Source: Utricularia gibba (Eukaryota; Plantae; Magnoliophyta). Taken from it: a stretch of DNA of 64,000 nucleotides. The notes below the pieces were generated by a model that was given only the letters and a program-made list of their open reading frames with translations, had not been told where the DNA came from and did not search any database. Positions 18,928 to 57,706 of this stretch are shown here, piece by piece. The DNA is taken from NCBI GenBank assembly GCA_002189035.1, contig NEEC01000002.1:1054001-1118000 (forward strand). The letters are read 5' to 3'. Each line of letters opens with the position of its first letter. The first letter of the stretch is position 1. A program made the translations under genes and the position numbers.

Positions 18928-19064
18928 TGATGTAGTTCCCCAACGTCCTATTGATACATGCAAGAATCAAAGGATAGCGAGAGGAACAAATTTCTTGCTT
19001 CACTTGCCAATGCCATACAAGGAGATGCGTATGTCTGGCATATGAAATTATGCATGTGAAGCAA
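18928..19064 (-). ncRNA. Candidate box H/ACA snoRNA, target not identified
   Basis: Two hairpins (ttgcttcac/gtgaagcaa; gttcctc/ggggaac with upper ttgat/atcaa), hinge AAGAAAT, and ACA three nt from the end. 137 nt, inside the snoRNA cluster. Confidence 0.55.
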
Positions 19065-19090
19065 AACCATTCAAGAGCAACTCGTTGTGT

Positions 19091-19177
19091 GAAACAATTC
19101 AGTCCCTTAGATGTTCGTAATGAATGCGATCACTTCCGCTGTCATTACAGGTCTGAGTAACGCATCAGCATTGTTTC
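19091..19177 (-). ncRNA. Box C/D snoRNA U25/snR56/snoR19-like, dual 18S guide
   Basis: 8-bp terminal stem gaaacaat/attgtttc; box C variant ATGCTGA. Guide CAGACCTGT + D' ATGA is complementary to 18S ACAGGTCTG (G equivalent to yeast Gm1428). Guide GAACATCTAAGGG + box D CTGA is complementary to 18S CCCTTAGATGTTC. Confidence 0.9.
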
Positions 19178-19223
19178 CAGACTGATTAGCTATCGATGTA
19201 AAATTCAAACTTCAGTAAATGGG

Positions 19224-19360
19224 TAGTGTAGCTGCTCAAAGGTTTTCCACATCTAAGAAAAAATGCGGAAGCAATACGTAGAAACAGCACTCCATCTGTT
19301 GCTTCAAGGGAACGAGTCAAAAGGAAATAAGGATAAATCCAGTCAACTAGATAGTGAAGC
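19224..19360 (-). ncRNA. Box H/ACA snoRNA, predicted to guide pseudouridylation in 25S GGGAACG-U-GAGCUGG (yeast snR37-type site)
   Basis: Hairpin 1: gcttca/tgaagc and agttga/ttgact, with pocket strands ctatct and cgttccct pairing AGGGAACG-UG-AGCUGG. Hairpin 2: gctgttt/gagcagc and ttccgcat/atgtggaa. ACA at 19227-19229. Confidence 0.75.
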
Positions 19361-19531
19361 TCTCCAGGAGTGAAAATGCGAATCACACTGGGTGGAATAC
19401 AAAATGCATTATCACAAGCCTGACCATCGCAATATCACTGTTTTGAAAATGTTCTATTGTTCATGTTGAGGAGACTTGAGAGTCTTTTAAAAAGTGAAGA
19501 AACAACCAAATTTTGAACTCATTTATAAACT

Positions 19532-19666
19532 TCATGTCCTTCAGCTTACTAGACCAACTTCATGTATGCAATCAGCAGGTCTGAAGAGCAGAAGTATATG
19601 TTTGTGAGCAGATTAACACCTACCTTCCCACTTTTACAAAAGAAGCGGTTGCCTGAAATTCCACTC
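19532..19666 (-). ncRNA. Box H/ACA snoRNA, predicted to guide pseudouridylation in 18S UUACU-U-UGAAGA (yeast snR80 site)
   Basis: In the 3' hairpin, pocket strands tcttc and agtaa flank the agacc/ggtct stem and pair with plant 18S TTACT-TT-GAAGA as recalled. ACA at 19535-19537. The 5' hairpin is closed by gagtgga/tctgctc. Confidence 0.72.
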
Positions 19667-19732
19667 AAAACCCAATTTCAAAATCTTACAATCAATAAAA
19701 CGAAAAGAGCAAGTCTTTGAAAAATTAACCAT

Positions 19733-19832
19733 TAACTCAGAATAATGCTTTATGTGCTCAAGGAATAGCCTTTGAAGGGCTTTTCTCATACAAGAGGTGT
19801 CAGAAAAATGAAAAGCACCACTCATCATCGTT
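19733..19832 (-). ncRNA. Candidate box C/D snoRNA
   Basis: Perfect box C ATGATGA (19822-19828), an internal CTGA, and a terminal CTGA (19737-19740). CTTTTCATTTTT before the internal CTGA could pair with 25S AAAGATGAAAAG with one G-U. Family not recognised. Confidence 0.45.
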
Positions 19833-19986
19833 TGCCCATACGACATGGGAGCAAATTTTTTTAAAAAGAGCTCAAATTTACGAAAATCAGTTAACAATCT
19901 CAAAAAACATGAATATTTTAGAAATTCAGCGCCTTTACTACTTGGAAACCGGAGAACAGAAAAACTAGTACAACAACACGAAAGAA

Positions 19987-20066
19987 GGCCTCAATGAGAA
20001 AATTCGACTGTCCACAAGAATGATTCAGACATATGCTTGTCAAGTGAAAATTTATTATCATTGGCC
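19987..20066 (-). ncRNA. U27: Box C/D snoRNA U27 (18S Am28 guide)
   Basis: GGCC/GGCC terminal stem. GACAAGCATATG followed by T-CTGA (D') is complementary to 18S CATATGCTTGTC and places A28 by the +5 rule. Box C is the variant ATGATAA and box D the variant TTGA. Confidence 0.88.
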
Positions 20067-20129
20067 AATACAGTTAGATAATCACGCTGCAACACAATTT
20101 CCGAATTCAGTAACAAAAAAATCAAATGG

Positions 20130-20197
20130 GATCATCAGATAGGAGCGAAAGATATTTTTGTAATCAAAGGTAGATCATTTGAACTATGCATCCACTC
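20130..20197 (-). ncRNA. U80: Box C/D snoRNA U80/snR60 (two 25S guides)
   Basis: Box C ATGATGA. GCATAGTTCA + D' ATGA pairs 25S TGAACTATGC (yeast Am817 equivalent). TCTTTCGCTCCTAT + CTGA pairs 25S ATAGGGGCGAAAGA (yeast Gm908 equivalent). Same architecture as human SNORD80 as recalled. Confidence 0.92.
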
Positions 20198-20367
20198 ATC
20201 ATATGAAACAAAATGGTGACTTTAGAAAAAATAAGAAACAAGAATATGGCAACAAAAACAGCATATCCAATCCTTCAAACCCATTGCGAAAACCAACAGT
20301 AACTACGAAGAGCCCGCAACAAAGCGTACAGACAAAAAAATTCATGGACTCAGTTTATGGGTGGTGA

Positions 20368-20442
20368 TATATCAGAATGGTCGGCATGGCACAGGGTGCC
20401 GATACGACGAACGAGACCTATCACAACTCATCATCATTGCCC
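20368..20442 (-). ncRNA. Box C/D snoRNA with 18S guide (snoR32-like; site equivalent to human 18S Am1383)
   Basis: Box C ATGATGA; box D CTGA at 20372-20375. The 13-nt AGGTCTCGTTCGT is complementary to 18S ACGAACGAGACCT and is followed by a degenerate D' (CGTA). The family name is tentative. Confidence 0.8.
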
Positions 20443-30363: not shown

Positions 30364-30825
30364 TAATTCATTCTTGCAACTTTTGTCCAACCTAAAGACG
30401 GATAAAAACATTATTTATATTATTTTAACATTTAGTTAAATTTAAATCATATAAACAACAATTATATTTACTAAAACATTTTTAAAATATAATTAAATTA
30501 TTAAACTATAAAATTAAAAAATCAAATCCGAAACATATGAAGAATTGAGGAGGAGGAGATGAAAATGACTTTGAACAAGATTAGGGTTGGTTGGTTAGAG
30601 TAATTATGAATTATTGCTAATTAATGAGTTGAATGTCTTAGATTAGGACTAGGTTTAGTTGAGGTAATTAGCTGAACCGCCTTATTAAAATCCTTCGTAG
30701 TTATTCTAGCCCTACATCGGGTCGGGTCGGGTCTACGAGGCTCCGTGTCAAAACTTTTAATTCAAAATTACATGGGCTAAAAGTTTTTTTGGGCAATTAT
30801 TATGATATTTTGGATTTTTTTTTCA

Positions 30826-35563: not shown

Positions 35564-37820
35564 ATGGCCCTGAGAACTCCCTGCGTCGCGCGGACGCTGG
35601 CGCCGGCGGCATCGGGTGCGCCGCCATCGAAGCCTGTCGTGATTCCTAAAGTGAAAGCGAAGGAATCTAGATGGAATCATCGGTTGGGTGTGGGAGGCTC
35701 GTTTTCATTGCCCGCTGCTGCTGTCGCTCCTCTCTTTGCGTTTTTTGAGGGGCCTCTTGAAGTCAGAGCTGAAGTTTTGCCGAAGGATCAGATCTTCACT
35801 TCTCTCACCCAGGTTAGTGTGTCCGATTAGAAGCGAATGTGTGGAAGTTGAAGAAATTGCATTTTGAATCTGGGTTTTTATTGGGTTTTTAGTTGGATTC
35901 TGCTCTGGAACAATTTCAAGATTTCGTTTCGAGTTTTCTTGGTTCTGCTGGGGAAGTGATTGGATCTCTCACCGAAGCTGCGAAGCCGAGTATAGAAACA
36001 GCGTTGCCTGTATTGCAGCGTGCTGGAGAGGCAAGCGTGAAGCTGGCTTCTCCTGTGGTCACGGAGGCTTCCAAGAAAGCTCAAGAAGCCATCCAGAGTT
36101 CTGGATTAGATACCGAGCCATTCGTTACAGCAGCTAAGGTAATGGATACAGGGGCTCTGTTCTCTTAACACATCTTTCAATACACTTTCGTGGATTTTGT
36201 GAATGATCTTAAAATGTAAACGTTTTATTGTTGCGTGAAAAGGAATTAGAAAACTCATGTTTGGGTCTCATATGAAGGGTCACTGGTATCTTTCATACCG
36301 AATAAGTGGCTGTGCAGAATTGTCTTAAAAGGAGTGATATTCTACTTGTCTTGCTAAAAGAAATCATAGCTTTATGATTCAGATGTGGTTGTAACAAAGA
36401 AACTTATGTGTTCATTTGAATTGCAGACAATTGTTGACACAGCTCAACAAACCACAAGGATGATTGATGAGGCTAAACCTATAGCCAGCTCTACTGTCGA
36501 GACAATCTCATCGACGCAGCCGTCTGTTATCTTAGCGACTGGTGGCGCATTGGTTGTTACATATCTCTTGCTTCCCCCCATCTTTTCAGCAATTTCTTAC
36601 GGCCTTAGGGGCTATAAGGGTAATCTTCTTTTCATCAATATATCTTAATGCTTTCCTCTGTTTGATGGATCATTAGAAATGTGCATGGTTTCAAAAAAAT
36701 GTAGCTTACGGCTTTTAGTATGATTCTGAAATAAAAAAATAGCCTTGTGGAAAAGGAGACAGGGCAAGTGACTTTTCGTGTGACATAGAAGGTTTCACAG
36801 CCATGCAAACTTTTGTTGTGTTTCACTTCGCTTTAACCACTTGCTTTCAGGTGACTTAACTCCTGCACAAACGCTGGATTTCCTGTGTACAAGAAACTAT
36901 GTTTTGATTGATATAAGGTCAGAAAAGGACAAAGACAAGGCTGGTATTCCTCGAGTCCCCTCCAATGCCGCAGGCAAAGTGATATCAATCCCGTAAGCAC
37001 CATTTTCTGATCAAAATACCTGAAACCTTTACCTTGAAGCACCTCAGGATTGGAGAATATGTTCTCTATCACACTATGGCCTCATTAAATATGGAGAGGA
37101 CGGAGTGATCCATTGAAGAATGCACACATTACACCATTTGGTGAAATAATATTGACTTGAAAAGGCACTCATAACGAATGAATAACGTGACTTGATATGC
37201 TGAGCATGCAATCCCCATATGAACGTTACATTGAACTGACCTCTTAGTTTGTTGTTTCCAGTTTAGAAGAATTACCCAACAAGCTTAAAAGCATTGTCAG
37301 AAATGTCAAGAAGGTTGAAGCTGAACTTGTGGCCCTGAAGATCTCCTATCTCAAAAAAGTTAGCAAGGGCTCCAACATTGTTATTCTGGACTCGTAAGTA
37401 CTCTTATGTACTCCTTTAAACGGTTCCTAGGTATTTCATTCCCTCAGCTGGGATTCTCATGAGTCCCACTGTCTTCTAAAAGAGAAAAACATTACAAAGT
37501 CTGGCGGAAGATCTTGACTGCTCCCTTTTTACAATGTGCTTTTAGAAGAATAATGATATCTGCTTTGGAAAAATGCATTCAGGTACTCAGATTCAGCTAA
37601 AATAGTTGCGAAAACGCTAACAAAGCTCGGGTTCAAGAACAGCTGGGTAGTAACAGATGGCTTCTCTGGTGGCAAGGGCTGGCTACAAAGCCGGTTGGGG
37701 ACTGATTCATACAATTTGTCTTTTGCGGAAGTTATTTCACCATCCCGAGTATTCTCTCCATCCAGTAGACGATTCGGAGGAACAAGCTCCACAAAGCTGC
37801 TCCCTGGTGCCTCTGAGTAA
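35564..37820 (+). CDS. CAS: Chloroplast thylakoid calcium-sensing receptor (rhodanese-like domain), 6 exons
   Basis: Transit peptide; DEAKPIASSTVETIS; TM ATGGALVVTYLLLPPIFSAI; YKGDLTPAQTLD...LIDIRSEKDKDKAGIPRVP; KISYLKKVSKGSNIVILDSYSDSAK; GFSGGKGWLQSRLG. Confidence 0.96.
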
Positions 37821-38147
37821 TCTCAAATGAATGTGTATTCTTGGTCTGTTGCAATACCCTCTCCTCCTCATTTATGTTTTGTAAGTGTTCCCAATCTTTT
37901 ATATAATCAGAAAAAGTGCCGGATTCCTGGTTAGCAACAACAGAGTCCACTTTGGTTCTGAAAACAAGTGGTTAATCAGACCATCCTGTTTTTGATTCTC
38001 AACTATAGATGCAACAGAATCCTGGAATGTGCCTAAAATCTTCTGCAGTTAACACCTTTATCAATGCTATACGCAGTCACTCGAGTTCCCAAAATCTTCT
38101 GCAGCTAGCAATCAAGCTCATGATCTGATCATAAGGTTATTGACTCA

Positions 38148-38346
38148 GGGAGCCAGGAAGTCGGCTTGTTTCAGCCGAGGGTGCTTGGGATAAAGCAACG
38201 CCCTTTATTTCAGGGCGTCAACTGGGCTCCCAAGGGGAACATATACCAGCATTCCCCTTCCGTGGAGTAGAAAATATAAGCAGAGAGTCCTTGTATGTGC
38301 CGAAGTCTCGTCGCATTGCTGTAATGATCATCAAGTACTCCACCGG
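38148..38346. ncRNA. Unidentified highly structured element (four-way cloverleaf plus two hairpins); candidate ncRNA or cis-element
   Basis: Perfect Watson-Crick helices tiled almost without spacers: 38148-54/38225-31 (7 bp) enclosing 38161-66/38173-78 (6 bp), 38182-86/38193-97 (5 bp) and 38198-204/38212-18 (7 bp); then 38232-39/38252-59 (8 bp) and 38262-69/38336-43 (8 bp). No family motif recognised; strand undetermined. Confidence 0.5.
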
Positions 38347-38432
38347 CGTTGTGGTTTATATGCTTTAGTGTGCGTGTGTGTGTGGCACTGGCTGCTTTTG
38401 GAGGATAAGAAAACACTTGAAATAGTTGATTT

Positions 38433-38450
38433 TGTGTGTGTGTGTGTGTG
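38433..38450. repeat. (TG)9 microsatellite in the LMW-PTP 5' region
   Basis: Seen directly; a second interrupted (TG)n run lies at about 38368-38384. Confidence 0.95.
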
Positions 38451-38483
38451 TTTCACGAAGGTCGCGGAGGAGAATATAGAGAG

Positions 38484-39752
38484 ATGCATATGCGTATAAT
38501 ATGCAGTCCTGTGAGGCCCAGTTGCAGAATTCCTAGCTTCGTTCCAACAAGACCAAATTGCAAGTTTTTCCCTCCTGCGGTGTGGCGCAACACCGGAAGC
38601 AACGAGCAAAGAAGAGCGCCGTTGACGCAAAGAATTATTGTTGTGAAGGCTTCATCCATGGCCTCCACGCCATCGACTGCTTCAGAAGATAATACCCACG
38701 CTGCAAAGCCATTTTCTGTACTATTCGTTTGCCTCGGCAACATCTGTAGAAGCCCCGCTGCCGAGGCCGTCTTCACACATCTAGTGAAGCAAAAGAATCT
38801 GGAATCAGAATTCCGTATTGATTCTGCTGGAACCATCAACTACCATGAGGTGAAGATTTCTTGTTTTTTTAGGGTTTTGGGTTTGTTGATTCGAAACAAC
38901 AACTGGGTTCGAGATTAAGCTGTGTTCATAAACTTACGTAGGGTGACCAAGCTGATCCAAGAATGAGAGCGGCTTCCAAAAGGCGTGGAATTGCAGTAAC
39001 TTCAATATCCAGGCCAATACGGCCCTCTGATTTTAGAGATTTTGATCTTATTCTCGCCATGGATAAGCGCAACAGAGGTACAGACCAAAGACCCATCTTT
39101 TAGCTGTTGTGAAGCTCTTCCAGTTCTTGCTGTACATTGTATGCTGCAGTATTTGTCCTTTCAACCAGCTTTTCCACATGAAACTGTCATAAATTTCACA
39201 GATTCTGAAACTTAACCAGAACTAAAAAATTAACTATGATGCCCCTATGACTACCTACCTAATGGTTTATGGAGATTCATGGAATTAACTTCTGCCCGTT
39301 TCTTATTGAAAAAAGAGGATATACTTTCTGCTTTCGAGAGGTGGAGGCACAGAGAAACATATCCAGATGGTGCAGCAAATAAGGTGATGGCAATTTCTTG
39401 TTCTAGATCTTTTACTTCGGTCAAGGTTATGTGGATGGATACCAGGAACATAGCTTGCTTATTCTGCAGTAAACATATCACAGGTTCAGCTGATGTGTTC
39501 ATATTGCAAGAGGCATCAGGAGACTGAGGTTCCAGACCCATATTTTGGTGGACCTGAAGGCTTTGAAAAGGTGCCAAGTGTGATTTTTCCCGGCGTAGCA
39601 GATGAGCATCATCGTTGTGTCTACTCAGTACTACGTGTTGTCTTGAACTCGGTATCGTTTTATATTCGTATTAGGTTCTGGACATGCTTGAAGACGCCTG
39701 TGGGTCGCTGTTGGAAAGCATCATTGCTGGGAGATCAGGTAAAGCTTCTTGA
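38484..39752 (+). CDS. Low-molecular-weight protein-tyrosine phosphatase with organellar transit peptide, 5 exons
   Basis: [17 protein letters not shown]-loop; IDSAGT; DPRMR; DLILAMD; [24 protein letters not shown]. Confidence 0.95.
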
Positions 39753-45730: not shown

Positions 45731-46996
45731 ATGCACGCCCATGCTCTGTGCTCTGCGATCGAGCTCAGTCTCAGCCGGCCCGCCTCGACCTACCCGCAGG
45801 AGTCGAATGGCTCAAACGCCGCCGCGGCGCCAGTCGCTGGATTCAGAAATGGTGCCGGAAATGTCGACGGAGGTCGCCACGAGTGGCAGAGCGCATGCGC
45901 GATTTTGGCGAGTAAAGTGGTTGCGCAGCAGCAACAGCGTGAGAGGAGCATCGTAGACGGCGGCAACGGCAGATTGGTTTTTAACGGACACCCATCACTT
46001 GACCTGGTACCGGTTGAGGGTTCCCGCTCTCTAGCGCATCCCAAACCGCTACGCATCGTTGATTTTTCTCCAGCGCCGATGCACGGATCCAAGATTCGCG
46101 TGGCGTACCATGGCGTTCCGGGAGCGTATGGTGAAGCAGCGGCTGGAAAGGCTTATCCGAATTGTGAGGCTATTCCTTGCGAGCAATTTGAGGTTGCGTT
46201 CCAGGCGGTGGAGCTCTGGATCGCTGATCGGGCTGTACTTCCGGTGGAGAACTCCCTCGGCGGTTCGATTCACCGGAATTATGACCTCCTCCTCCGTCAC
46301 CGCCTCCACATCGTCGGCGAGGTTCAACTTCCGATCCATCACTGCCTCCTTGCTCTCCCCGGTGTCAGAAAGGAGAATCTCACGCGGGTGATCAGTCATC
46401 CCCAGGCTTTCTACCAGTGCGAGCGCACGCTCACGGAAATGAACCTCTCCGTCGCGCGTGAGGCCGTCGACAACACCGCTGGCGCCGCAGAATACATCGC
46501 ATCGAAAAATCTCCACGACACCGCAGCGATCGCCTCGTCCCGTGCCGCAGAGATCTACGGTCTCAACATCCTCGCCGACGGAATCCAGGACGACTTCGGC
46601 AACGTGACGCGGTTCGTGATGCTAGCTCGTGAGCCCATCGTTCCGAGAACCGACCGACCGTTCAAGACCTCCATCGTCTTCGCCCACGATGAGGCCGGCA
46701 CCAGCGTCCTCTTCAAGGTCCTGTCAGCGTTCGATTTCCGCAACATCAGCCTCACTAAAATTGAGTCGCGGCCGCACCGCAACCGCCCCATTCGCGTCAT
46801 CGACGACGCCAACGTCGGCACAGCCAAGCACTTCGAGTACGTGTTCTACATCGATTTCGAGGCCTCCATGGCGGAGGCGCGCGCGCAGAACGCGCTCGCC
46901 GAGGTCCAAGAGTTCACATCGTTTCTGAGGGTCCTCGGCAGTTATCCGATGGATATGACGCCGTGGAATGTACCGCCGTCCTGCGCCGCAGGCTGA
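45731..46996 (+). CDS. ADT: Arogenate dehydratase (ADT3/6-like), intronless, plastid transit peptide
   Basis: [13 protein letters not shown]; [16 protein letters not shown]; [20 protein letters not shown]; SHPQA; NVTRF; ACT domain with TKIESRP and [11 protein letters not shown]. Confidence 0.97.
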
Positions 46997-47215
46997 CCAG
47001 ATCTCAAATGGTTTACTGGAAGGTGCATGGCGGTGCCGTCGCCTGGTATTTCCTCCCTCGGGAGGATAATGATAAACATGACTGGCTCATCGCTGCTCCT
47101 TCGGTCGCTGTTCGACAAAAACAAAACAAAACGATTCCAGAATTCAACTTCTGATAGCAGTACTATTTCTCTGAGATCAAAATTCGCAAAAAGAGAACAT
47201 GATCCGAAAACAGAA

Positions 47216-47288
47216 CGATCGCAGTGGGATTCGAACCCACGACCTTTAGATCCGGAGTCTAACGCGATATCCACTCCGCTATGCGATC
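47216..47288 (-). tRNA. tRNA-Arg(CCG)
   Basis: 73-nt cloverleaf GATCGCA...TGCGATC; D-arm GCGGAGTGGATATCGC; anticodon arm TTAGA-CTCCGGA-TCTAA; T-loop GGTTCGAATCC. Confidence 0.97.
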
Positions 47289-48756
47289 AAAATCAGTGAA
47301 ATCAAGCAACAGCAATTTCTAACCACCGATTACTCACAGAATCAGCGGCATAAGGGCAATACAATAAGAAAAACAACGTCAGATTTACCTTTTCCAGAAT
47401 CCGCGGTAGAAAAGCGCCGGCAGATAGATCGGTGTCTTCACGTCCCCATTCCTCCACGATTTTCTCCAGAGAGATTCACGATGCGGAAACCAGGCTTCAA
47501 ACAAAAAGCTGTGAAACTCGTGACTGAAGGTTGAAAAGTGATCCTTTTTCCACATTTAGAAAAGTTGAGGTAATTTGCTCGAGCGACCCGCAAGTCTCCA
47601 TATTCGCTTTTTGACCCCACTTTTTTACTTCTTTGCCGATCCGATTTACCTGCCTGCCCACATTGCCGCTATTTTCTTGGCGCATATTTCATTAAATATT
47701 AATTTAAAACCACTCACTGAATATTGAATAAGAAATTTCATTATTCAATTCGTTATTCAATATTCGCCGAAAAATCAATTTTTAATTTTAATTTAAAACA
47801 TTTTTTTATTTTTATCTACTCAACTCTCAAGTCTCAAACCAGCATTAAAAAAGCAGAGGCACCCAAAAGTACGACACTGTCCAACACAGCAGCAGTTTGA
47901 AGTTGGAGCATCTGACATGAAATTGTTTTTTTGTCCTGCAATACTAATAGGCAAGTAACAGAAGAGAAGATGATTCAGCAACGGAGATGGTAACTTCGGA
48001 CCCCTGCACTCCTTCAACAGAAAACAGGTTAATTGACAAGAGTTGTTTGTGCTGCAGCTCCCTCAACTGGGCATACAAAAACCCCCTTCCTGACCAAACA
48101 CCTGTACCAGTTTCATAGTAACAAGATACCATTAAACACAAGAACGAAACACAGAGTATCTCAGTCTTTCTAAGCAGGGAACCTGGACCTGCAAAACTAG
48201 TTTGACAGGTTAGATAAATGCAATCTAGAGAAAACTGTTAAACGGGAATAGATGATGAAGTGGAAAACTCACAAGCATGGAACTGTTGCATGCAAAAATA
48301 TACCTCATGACTGCATTGTTTCAGCAAATAAGTCAAGGAACAACATACATCATAAAGAAAATGCTATGATCCTATAACTATTGTAAATATGAGAAGGCTC
48401 TTTTACAGGTTTATTGAATCTGTATGCTTAGAAATTGCATCCCACAATCTAACTTTCTTACTGTTACAGCAAGAGTAGATATATATGGAATTCTGTGCAA
48501 AATTTCTTAGAATGTAAACCTAAACTAACATGGTAAAAGCATAGTAACAATAGAAGGAGAAAACAAGCAAGTGAACAGAAAGGGCAGGTTCCATTTAGCA
48601 AGTTCATATAAGGGTTGCAAGAAGAAGGATATGGGTTAAGTGAAGGGACATAGGATGTATAACGTTGAGGTGACTTTTAAGTTACTTTCCAACAAGACGA
48701 ATGATAAAGAAAAAAGGAGATGAGGGAAAGGATAGAAACAAACCAGTAGTCAGGCA

Positions 48757-50187: not shown

Positions 50188-50270
50188 GGTGGTTTGCCCG
50201 AGTGGTTAAGGGGGAAGACTTAAGATCTTCTGTACATAAGTACGCGTGGGTTCGAACCCCACAGCCACCA
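50188..50270 (+). tRNA. tRNA-Leu(TAA)
   Basis: 83-nt GGTGGTT...AGCCACCA; anticodon arm GAAGA-CTTAAGA-TCTTC; long variable arm; GGTTCGAACCC; T5 terminator about 25 nt downstream. Confidence 0.97.
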
Positions 50271-55589: not shown

Positions 55590-56318
55590 CTGCAGAAGCC
55601 TTGTAAATCTGCGGTTCTTCTGTAAATAAAAATAATCATTTTAATATCTATAAAAAAAAAAATTCACAAAATTGACTTTCCATTTCGAGCATTAAAGCGT
55701 GTCCACGTTTATGGTATTATAATTATAATTTTCAGAATACAAAATAATATTTCTCGAATTTACAGTGAATAAATAAGATTGACCTAGGAAAATTTTTAGG
55801 TCCTTTTTTTACTTCTATTTTTACCAAAAGTAATTTTACACATAATACTTCCTTTTTTTTCTGTTTTTGATAAAAATATTTTTTAATTATAATTAAAAGT
55901 AATGCATCATTAAAAATAAGAAAACAGTTGTTTCTATTTTTCATTTCTATTTTTTTCATCATATTCTTAAAAATATCTATTTCTATAATTTTTCTAAAAC
56001 ATTTCATTTCTATTTACACTTCTTCAAAAAATTCATGTTTCTCCTTTTTATTTTTTTAAAAACAAAAGCAAACTTCAAAAATTTTCCAACGCACTTATTT
56101 AATGTTGGTTAATTTTGGATATGGTTACGTGTGACACACAACCGAGCCCTGGTCCTTATCCCTTGTACATTAAATAATTATATATTTAATAATATTAATT
56201 AAATTTTAATACTGACAAAACACCGTGTGAATGCGACTGGTAACAAAATATCTTGATGGGTCGCCGGTAGTTAGAATGTCCTAGAAACCTTGGGCGCCGC
56301 CATGGTGCTTCACTTCCA

Positions 56319-56558: not shown

Positions 56559-57706
56559 ATGGGATGGGTAAGAACAGAGGATTTCAGAGTGGGAGAGGTG
56601 ATGTGTTTAATGGGTTGCTTTGGTTGCCTGAGTTTTGATTCTTGCAGCTGAGCAAGAAGGAGAAGAAAGAGAAGGGGAAGGAGAGGAAGAGCACCGTCGT
56701 GCTGAAGACGGAATGCCAGTGCAACGGCTGTACTTCCAAAGTCATCGACTGTATTAAACGTTTTGATGGTGAGAAGAGAGAATTTGGACTGGTGGGTGAT
56801 TCCGTGGTTTGGATGTTTTCTTAAGCAGCATGTCTTTCTTTGACACAGGGGTGGATATGGTGGATTTCGGAGAGGGACAGACGGTCGTGGTGGTGGGGGA
56901 GGTAGATCCGGTGAAGCTCCAGCAGAAAGTGGAGAAAAAGACGCACAAAAAAGTGGAAATCTTGTCTCCAACTACTGGTGAAGACGAGGAGGAAGAAGAG
57001 GTTACCTTTCTGACTGTCCTGCTAGTTCATCGTTTTCAGGGTCCCCTTGTTCTTAGTAGGTTTTCATTAAACGACCGGCGGTTTTCCTCCTCCACAGCCA
57101 TCGGTGACTACGGCGGTGATGAAGTTGGACTTCCATTGCAATGGCTGCACAAAGAAGATATACAAAATAGTAATGAATACCGAAGGTAACATTTCGTCAA
57201 ACATCTGATGCTCATCCTCCTTGCACATTAAAAATTCATTCTTTCTCCTGCAAGGTTTCACAGGCATGAAGATGGACGCGGAGAGGCAACTCCTGACGGT
57301 CACCGGGTCCATGGACATGGAGGAGTTGGCCGAGTCGCTCCAGAGACGGCTATCGAGAAGCGTCGTAATCGTACCTCAAAAGGAACAAGGACGCAAAAAG
57401 AAACACTCCGGCGGCGACAAGGCCAAGGAGAAATCAAAGGAAAAGGAGCATGCTGCAGCAGCAAACCCTTCCCCCGTCGGTTGGATGGCCGGAGATCACC
57501 GCCACTCCGGCCCAAATCCTTACGGGGCTCCATGGGTTCCGACTCCGAATCCTTATGGGGCTCCATGGGTTCCGACTCCGAATCCTTATGGAGCTCCATG
57601 GGTTCCGAATCCAAACTTATACGGGGCTCCATGGGCTCCGAACCCTTACGGAGCTCCGCACTTTCACAACCCAAGTCCATCTGGAGCCCCGTTTCATGCC
57701 CAGTAG
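56559..57706 (+). CDS. Heavy-metal-associated domain protein (two HMA domains, HIPP-derived), 5 exons; CaaX tail out of frame
   Basis: VVLKTECQCNGCTSKV and AVMKLDFHCNGCTKKI metal motifs; VDPVKLQQKVEKKTHKKVEILSP; Pro/Tyr-rich repeats. Stop TAG at 57704-57706, while CSIL* lies in another frame ending at 57747. Confidence 0.88.
57512..57660 (+). repeat. 33-bp coding tandem repeat (PNPYGAPWVPT), 3 near-perfect and 2 partial copies
   Basis: cc(a/g)aatcctta(c/t)gg(g/a)gctccatgggttccga(c/a)t repeated in frame. Confidence 0.95.

Follow-up and report, generated by a model that had tools for sequence, protein, structure and literature searches.

The 840-bp spacer that separates a CAS-like gene from LMW-PTP contains a four-way junction built of perfect Watson-Crick helices, an object of 85 nt in which one closing helix surrounds three short perfect palindromes and which is present as a single copy in the 64-kb window (the whole stretch of DNA that was analysed). 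The junction belongs to no described RNA family and is not a tRNA-like gene. Its structure, its rarity, the symmetry of its strands, the lack of any signature of a known family or of a promoter, and the small duplications near it were all observed directly. We tentatively prefer, with rather less than even confidence, to read it as a lineage-specific nested inverted repeat that has been made and kept perfect by DNA-level copying and that has at most a by-product effect on transcription. The features of the spacer and its borders are as follows (positions are those of the window).

37818 to 37820, plus strand: stop codon of the upstream CAS-like gene (ORF listing).
38016 to 38054, plus strand: source of two local direct duplications, both diverged (alignment and shuffles).
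38148 to 38231, no strand assigned: core element, perfect Watson-Crick helices of 27 bp in all that form a four-way junction (MFE and centroid folds).
38148 to 38154 with 38225 to 38231, no strand assigned: closing helix, GGGAGCC with GGCTCCC (sequence and fold).
38148 to 38156: 5' strand of the closing helix, GGGAGCC plus AG, with partners at 38222-38223 and 38225-38231 and with G38224 bulged.
38161 to 38178, no strand assigned: arm 1, 6-bp stem and 6-nt loop (sequence and fold).
38182 to 38197: arm 2, 5-bp stem and 6-nt loop, GGGAUA on the plus strand and UAUCCC on the minus strand (sequence and fold).
38198 to 38218, no strand assigned: arm 3, 7-bp stem and 7-nt loop (sequence and fold).
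38232 to 38259, no strand assigned: hairpin 2, 8-bp stem and 12-nt loop, adjoining the junction (shuffles).
38262 to 38343, no strand assigned: hairpin 3, 8-bp inverted repeat around 66 nt of weak structure (shuffles).
38355 to 38362: TATA-like motif with a putative promoter role, TTTATATG on the plus strand and a better match, TATAAA, on the minus strand (38361-38356) (sequence).
38658 to 38860, plus strand: first coding exon of LMW-PTP, PF01451 (Pfam; ORF 38436-38918).

The closing helix is extended by 2 bp (38155-38156 with 38222-38223) beyond a one-base bulge. Arms 1 and 3 carry a common loop motif of 10-11 nt, two closing pairs included (CUGAAAYAAG on the minus strand): on the minus strand, CUGAAACAAG is the loop of arm 1 together with its two closing pairs, and arm 3, which is CUGAAAUAAAG there, contains the same motif. 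The stems of the two arms differ at at least 4 positions, each difference being complementary, and the window contains no other hairpin with a loop motif of this type. The three loops read UGUUUC, GGGAUA and UUAUUUC on the plus strand and GAAAUAA, UAUCCC and GAAACA on the minus strand. Every pair of the junction (27 of 27) is Watson-Crick; G-U pairs and mismatches are absent, and both strands, as well as single-stranded DNA, therefore fold equally well. Hints of a strand are confined to the minus strand, where two of the loops are A-rich (GAAACA, GAAAUAA) and arm 3 has one extra G-U pair. The junction is retained in the MFE and centroid folds of both strands within a 531-nt context. Next to it, hairpin 2 pairs AAGGGGAA (38232-38239) with TTCCCCTT (38252-38259), and hairpin 3 pairs GTGGAGTA (38262-38269) with TACTCCAC (38336-38343). 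The six helices that the initial annotation had placed in this region, the related loops of two arms, a 14-bp duplication (38035/38091) and the TATA-like motif are all present in the sequence.

Folding z-scores were obtained part by part on both strands, each against 500 dinucleotide shuffles. The 85-nt junction gave z = -3.8 on the plus strand and -5.4 on the minus strand, where 0/500 shuffles folded as well, and z = -4.4 when folded as single-stranded DNA with DNA parameters. Hairpin 2 is marginal with respect to chance (z = -2.1 on plus and -2.2 on minus; 14-16 of the 500 shuffles were equally stable), and hairpin 3, which is probably not part of the element, lies within chance (about -1.0 on plus and about -1.2 on minus). 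Taken whole, the 199 nt gave z = -2.7 (plus) and -3.9 (minus), and a 211-nt segment gave -2.2 and -3.3 in a separate folding run. The signal in the 199 nt is confined to the first 85 nt, comprising the closing helix and the three hairpins. The earlier statement that six helices tile beyond chance thus stands for four of the six, those of the junction, which is significant on both strands, but not for the two 'long hairpins' (hairpins 2 and 3; z = -2.1 and about -1).

In a 90-nt sliding fold scan of the whole window, the junction was the top non-repetitive locus. The sole signal above it came from a coding tandem repeat at 57.5 kb (57470-57700; PYGAPWVP-like units with a GGAGCTCC palindrome; z = -4.85), which is a repeat artefact and not RNA structure. 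Unrelated loci in the same scan reached z = -4.1 to -4.7; folding energy alone therefore fails to single out the junction, and we searched directly for four-way junctions made of perfect Watson-Crick helices only. The window contains three such junctions, of which this element is the sole GC-rich one. The other two (30415-30492 and 55857-55941) are formal junctions in low-complexity sequence of 8-16% GC, with MFEs of -7 to -10 kcal/mol, and do not fold, a reminder that counting helices without energies misleads in AT-rich DNA. Perfect four-way junctions of at least 25 bp were absent from 41 Mb of Markov sequence, and junctions of at least 25 bp with GC of at least 0.45 were absent from 72 Mb of block-shuffled window, the best there being two at 24 bp; the GC-rich equivalents of the junction thus number 0 in about 113 Mb of simulated sequence in all. 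These counts suggest a chance rate of about 0.001 per window, or of the order of one GC-rich junction of this kind per 100-Mb genome, a rate to be weighed against the roughly 1,588 windows of the genome that were examined. GC-rich perfect hairpins of at least 7 bp otherwise occur in the window at chance frequency (9 observed against 10.1 expected), and the junction is therefore a local event rather than a member of a family. The chance probability of the common loop motif in arms 1 and 3 is roughly estimated at 0.003-0.04. Junction and motif together would arise by pure chance in perhaps a few per cent of genomes, the motif having been noticed post hoc.

Searches for known families and for other copies bear out the initial description of an unrecognised structured element, given the significant folding of the junction and the absence of any match in Rfam, ARAGORN, plasmids, phages, viral contigs or prokaryotic genomes. 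Rfam 15 was searched at gathering level over the whole window and at E<=10 over 37600-38900, and nothing was reported inside 38100-38400. Neither BLAST with the spacer nor a covariance model of the junction revealed a second copy in the 64-kb window. A pattern shaped on the structure had 0 matches in viral contigs and prokaryotic genomes, and blastn against plasmids and phages left the element unmatched. An 18-mer scan of metagenome contigs returned at least 120 matches, all of them chance matches in GC-rich bacterial contigs with a flank identity of about 25%.

Several specific gene types were considered and rejected. A coding reading would rest on a 74-codon frame (38144-38365, plus strand) and a 68-aa ORF on the minus strand, neither with a Pfam match or a homologue in word searches. 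In plant genes of the snRNA type the USE stands about 25-35 bp upstream of the TATA box; here the USE (TCCCACATCG) is absent within 2 mismatches from 38000-38500, around the TATA at 38355-38362. Over the whole window, TCCCACATCG within 2 mismatches occurs 68 times against 42.7 +/- 5.8 in shuffles (0/100 reach 68). A gene of the Pol III type is contradicted by the T-runs, which fail to bracket the structure (T4 on the minus strand at 38274-38271, inside hairpin 3, and next at 38094-38091; first T4 on the plus strand at 38396-38399), and by the lack of an A or B box. For a box C/D snoRNA, UGAUGA (38333-38328, minus strand) and CUGA motifs are present, but their flanks are unpaired and form no terminal stem. 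Families of snoRNAs do not match the element, whereas five match at 18.9-20.4 kb, where Rfam confirms a minus-strand cluster of six snoRNAs (18928-20442; snoR136, SNORD25, snoR77, snoR1, snR60/Z15 and Z43). A telomerase RNA was rejected on the lack of an 8-10-mer template of any of four repeat types in 37800-38700 on either strand; the initial annotation had likewise seen neither A/B boxes nor a telomere template. A MITE or SINE is opposed by unrelated flanks (...ACTCA and AAGGG...), with no target-site duplication and no A/B boxes. Sequence inspection also led us to reject a hammerhead core, a Helitron CTRR end, a geminivirus nonanucleotide and a primer-binding site for initiator tRNA-Met.

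The window is nuclear and comes from a plant with a very compact genome; it carries about one gene per 3-4 kb. The gene upstream of the spacer is presumably CAS, as in the initial annotation and by comparison with the Arabidopsis C-terminus; its single exons had no Pfam match, and one Atlas look-up was likewise blank. From the sequence, the CAS poly(A) region likely lies at about 37900-38010, upstream of the element. Downstream, LMW-PTP, a low-molecular-weight protein tyrosine phosphatase, has an ATG at 38658 and an in-frame ATG further upstream at 38484 that would add 58 residues. The resulting extension (38484-38660) is rich in Ser, Thr and Arg and ends ...VKASS followed by MAS. An LMW-PTP homologue from another plant has an N-terminal extension in the same exon, and the Sesamum model begins at the downstream Met; LMW-PTP may have alternative starts and dual targeting. 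A single-exon arogenate dehydratase gene lies at 45731-46993, and its nearest relatives, proteins of the Lamiales (Rehmannia, Sesamum, Abeliophyllum, Buddleja), reach no more than 82-83% identity. The source is thus probably a member of the Lamiales that lacks a near sequenced relative in the protein collection; compactness alone would hint at Lentibulariaceae. In Anisodus acutangulus, homologues of LMW-PTP (38658-38915) and of arogenate dehydratase (45731-46993) lie on one contig with locus tags 14 apart (K7X08_028420 and K7X08_028406), and the gene block seems to be syntenic between this Lamiales genome and Solanaceae.

Two diverged direct duplications share the source segment upstream of the junction. 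One joins 38029-38054 to 38085-38110 (22/26 identical), and the other joins 38016-38036 to 38284-38304 (17/21 identical), its copies lying on opposite sides of the junction. Both are significant, with 0 and 1 of 200 shuffles reaching their scores, which suggests that DNA in this spacer has been repeatedly patched by local copying. The spacer also contains (GT)n tracts at 38370-38386 and 38425-38452. Together, the duplications and tracts of 37925-38350 and beyond suggest repeated local templated repair or slippage.

Structured RNAs of this size that have long been under selection usually contain a few G-U pairs. The perfection of the junction on both strands, with no G-U pair, therefore favours a DNA-level or recent origin. 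We read the junction as a product of DNA-level copying also because significant small duplications lie on both sides of it, because there is no USE, A/B box, tRNA or Rfam signal and no bracketing T-run, and because sequence and covariance-model searches found it as a single copy in 64 kb. We infer both that the junction arose by mutation and that it has no dedicated function as an RNA. A hairpin unit may have been duplicated, and the arms of the palindromes may then have been homogenised via template switching during replication or via templated repair; the small direct duplications nearby would have been left by similar processes. Two reports document that template switching creates perfect stems, keeps them perfect and expands inverted repeats near promoters (PMC8794818, PMC13100816); it can also carry a change across to the opposite arm in one step, mimicking compensation (PMC8794818). 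The spacer must act at once as the termination zone for the CAS-like gene and as LMW-PTP's proximal promoter. RNA crossing the junction in either direction, or either strand of unwound DNA, would fold into a very stable four-way junction, and any effect would be a by-product on transcription in the spacer (pausing, termination, promoter architecture) rather than a dedicated RNA product. Three points tell against a DNA-level origin: four helices tiling into a closed junction would be unexpected from independent template switches; a common loop motif on differing, complementary stems is the pattern of a selected hairpin module; and 85 nt of idle, ordered DNA is somewhat surprising in the 390-bp functional spacer of a very compact genome.

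It is possible, if doubtful, that the junction is instead a lineage-specific structured RNA domain, carried by a Pol II transcript running through the spacer. On the plus strand, such a transcript might arise by read-through from CAS or be a long 3' UTR of that gene; on the minus strand, it might be an antisense RNA that starts some 25-30 nt downstream of the TATAAA (38361-38356). The two CUGAAAYAAG loops would be a putative pair of sites at which a protein or RNA partner binds. Consistent with this are the very strong local fold that persists in the 531-nt context on both strands, the repetition of the loop motif on different, fully complementary stems, and the A-rich minus-strand loops (as in many functional RNAs) together with the G-U pair gained by arm 3. 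A good TATAAA stands on the minus strand 12 nt upstream of hairpin 3, but a start set by it would land within hairpin 3; for the plus strand, the likely CAS poly(A) region precedes the element. Plants do produce stable structured RNAs from Pol II lncRNAs, GUT15 being an example (PMC6152437). Against an RNA domain, none of the 27 pairs of this junction is G-U, and neither a second copy nor a relative was found in the 64 kb, in Rfam or in the viral, plasmid, phage and prokaryotic collections. The more specific proposal, namely that the junction is the core of an undescribed lineage-specific structured RNA, most plausibly transcribed from the minus strand under the TATAAA and bound at its loops by a dimeric or repeated RNA-binding partner, is unlikely.

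Pure chance would make of the junction four short perfect inverted repeats in a GC-rich spacer, singled out by a genome-wide search for oddities. The simulated frequency, near one GC-rich junction per 100 Mb, the large number of windows examined and the comparable z-scores of other loci in the window all make such a coincidence conceivable. Three further coincidences weigh against it, however: the loop motif common to two arms, the closing helix that extends by 2 bp and the 8-bp hairpin that adjoins the junction. With these included the expectation falls to a few per hundred genomes; we consider pure chance improbable.

Still less probable is that the junction is what remains of a mobile or single-stranded DNA element, or one of its ends; a tiny MITE, a Helitron-like or rolling-circle end and a hairpin terminus would be examples. 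Perfect palindromes nested in an inverted repeat of 7-9 bp do resemble folded ssDNA termini, the fold is stable with DNA parameters (z = -4.4), and its position is promoter-proximal, where small plant transposons commonly land. The helix ends nevertheless lack a target-site duplication, neither BLAST nor the covariance model found a second copy in 64 kb, no CTRR or nonanucleotide is suitably placed, no partner terminus or replication gene was found, and the viral, plasmid and phage collections gave no match. The mobile-element end proposed in the initial annotation is accordingly disfavoured.

We hold it very unlikely that the palindromes are a cluster of transcription-factor sites in the proximal promoter of LMW-PTP, with an incidental closing helix. 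If the ATG at 38484 is used, the start site would lie upstream of 38484 and the element at about -40 to -240 of the LMW-PTP promoter, and in yeast, as one report describes, inverted repeats near promoters have been expanded by template switching (PMC13100816). The half-sites differ among the three palindromes, however, and a closing helix of 7 + 2 bp whose strands lie 70 nt apart is left without a role.

The last reading, which goes back to the initial annotation and is of a tRNA-like element that is cut by PRORP and RNase Z or serves as a phloem-mobility signal in CAS mRNA, is largely refuted on anatomy, and we give it almost no credence. A 7-bp closing helix of the acceptor type is present (38148-38154 / 38225-38231) and, with three arms, gives the outline of a cloverleaf. 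In a tRNA the connectors measure 2, 1, 4-5 (the variable region) and 0 nt and the T arm stacks on the acceptor stem, whereas the connectors of the junction measure 4-6, 3, 0 and 3-6 nt on either strand. The T stem of a tRNA has 5 bp and a 7-nt UUCRANY loop, and its D stem has 3-4 bp and a GG loop; the junction has arms of 6, 5 and 7 bp, none of which abuts the closing helix, and it contains neither a UUCRANY T-loop nor an acceptor/T-arm minihelix. The tRNA model RF00005 (E<=10, 37600-38900) and ARAGORN were silent on the element, yet both tRNAs of the window, tRNA-Arg(CCG) and tRNA-Leu(UAA) at 47215-47289 and 50188-50270, were recovered (ARAGORN and Rfam). In the GUT15 tRNA-like RNA of Arabidopsis the stems and loops are of canonical size and the T-loop is conserved (PMC6152437), unlike in the element. 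The term 'tRNA-like cloverleaf' thus survives loosely, as a name for a four-way junction, but not as to tRNA anatomy or tRNA-model score, and the suggested processing of the RNase P/Z type falls with the missing connectors, T-loop and acceptor-stacked T arm.

The analysis has a corrective value in that the tRNA-like and RNase P/Z reading fails, that the signal resides in 85 of 199 nt, and that a z near -5 at a single locus is about what is expected once per 100-Mb genome. Should transcription and conservation of the junction be demonstrated, one of the most compact plant genomes, in which little idle DNA is left, would have yielded a new structured RNA; were the minus-strand RNA reading true, the junction would represent a new class of RNA in a plant genome that has shed most of its non-functional DNA. 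Under the DNA-level reading that we prefer, the spacer is a candidate case of several perfect inverted repeats assembling beside a promoter and could be used, with the sequences of relatives, for testing models of template switching.

Among known systems, the T- or Y-shaped hairpin termini of linear ssDNA replicons of the parvovirus type resemble the element in having small palindromes nested in a larger one and in being stable as ssDNA. They have two internal palindromes whereas the element has three, and the element is present in single copy, with no partner terminus, replication gene or viral similarity; hairpin-terminus elements of the parvovirus type are not known from plants. As in the element, a helix in the U1 and U11 snRNAs encloses three stem-loops and a further hairpin comes after it, and the length is likewise about 110-200 nt, but the element lacks an end complementary to the 5' splice site, an Sm site, a USE/TATA snRNA promoter and an Rfam match. 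The tRNA-like RNAs released from Pol II transcripts (Arabidopsis GUT15 and vertebrate mascRNA) also form a compact four-way junction whose closing helix has 7 bp, and they too lie outside a Pol III gene context, beside protein-coding genes. They differ from the element in their canonical stem, loop and connector sizes, their T-loop and their acceptor/T-arm stack, and tRNA models are silent on the element. A further comparison is with the inverted repeats that replication template switching has made or perfected (PMC8794818, PMC13100816), which share with the element short perfect arms, arbitrary loops, a promoter-proximal position and local duplications. The events so far described are single hairpins, whereas the element is a closed junction of four helices with a common loop motif in two of its arms.
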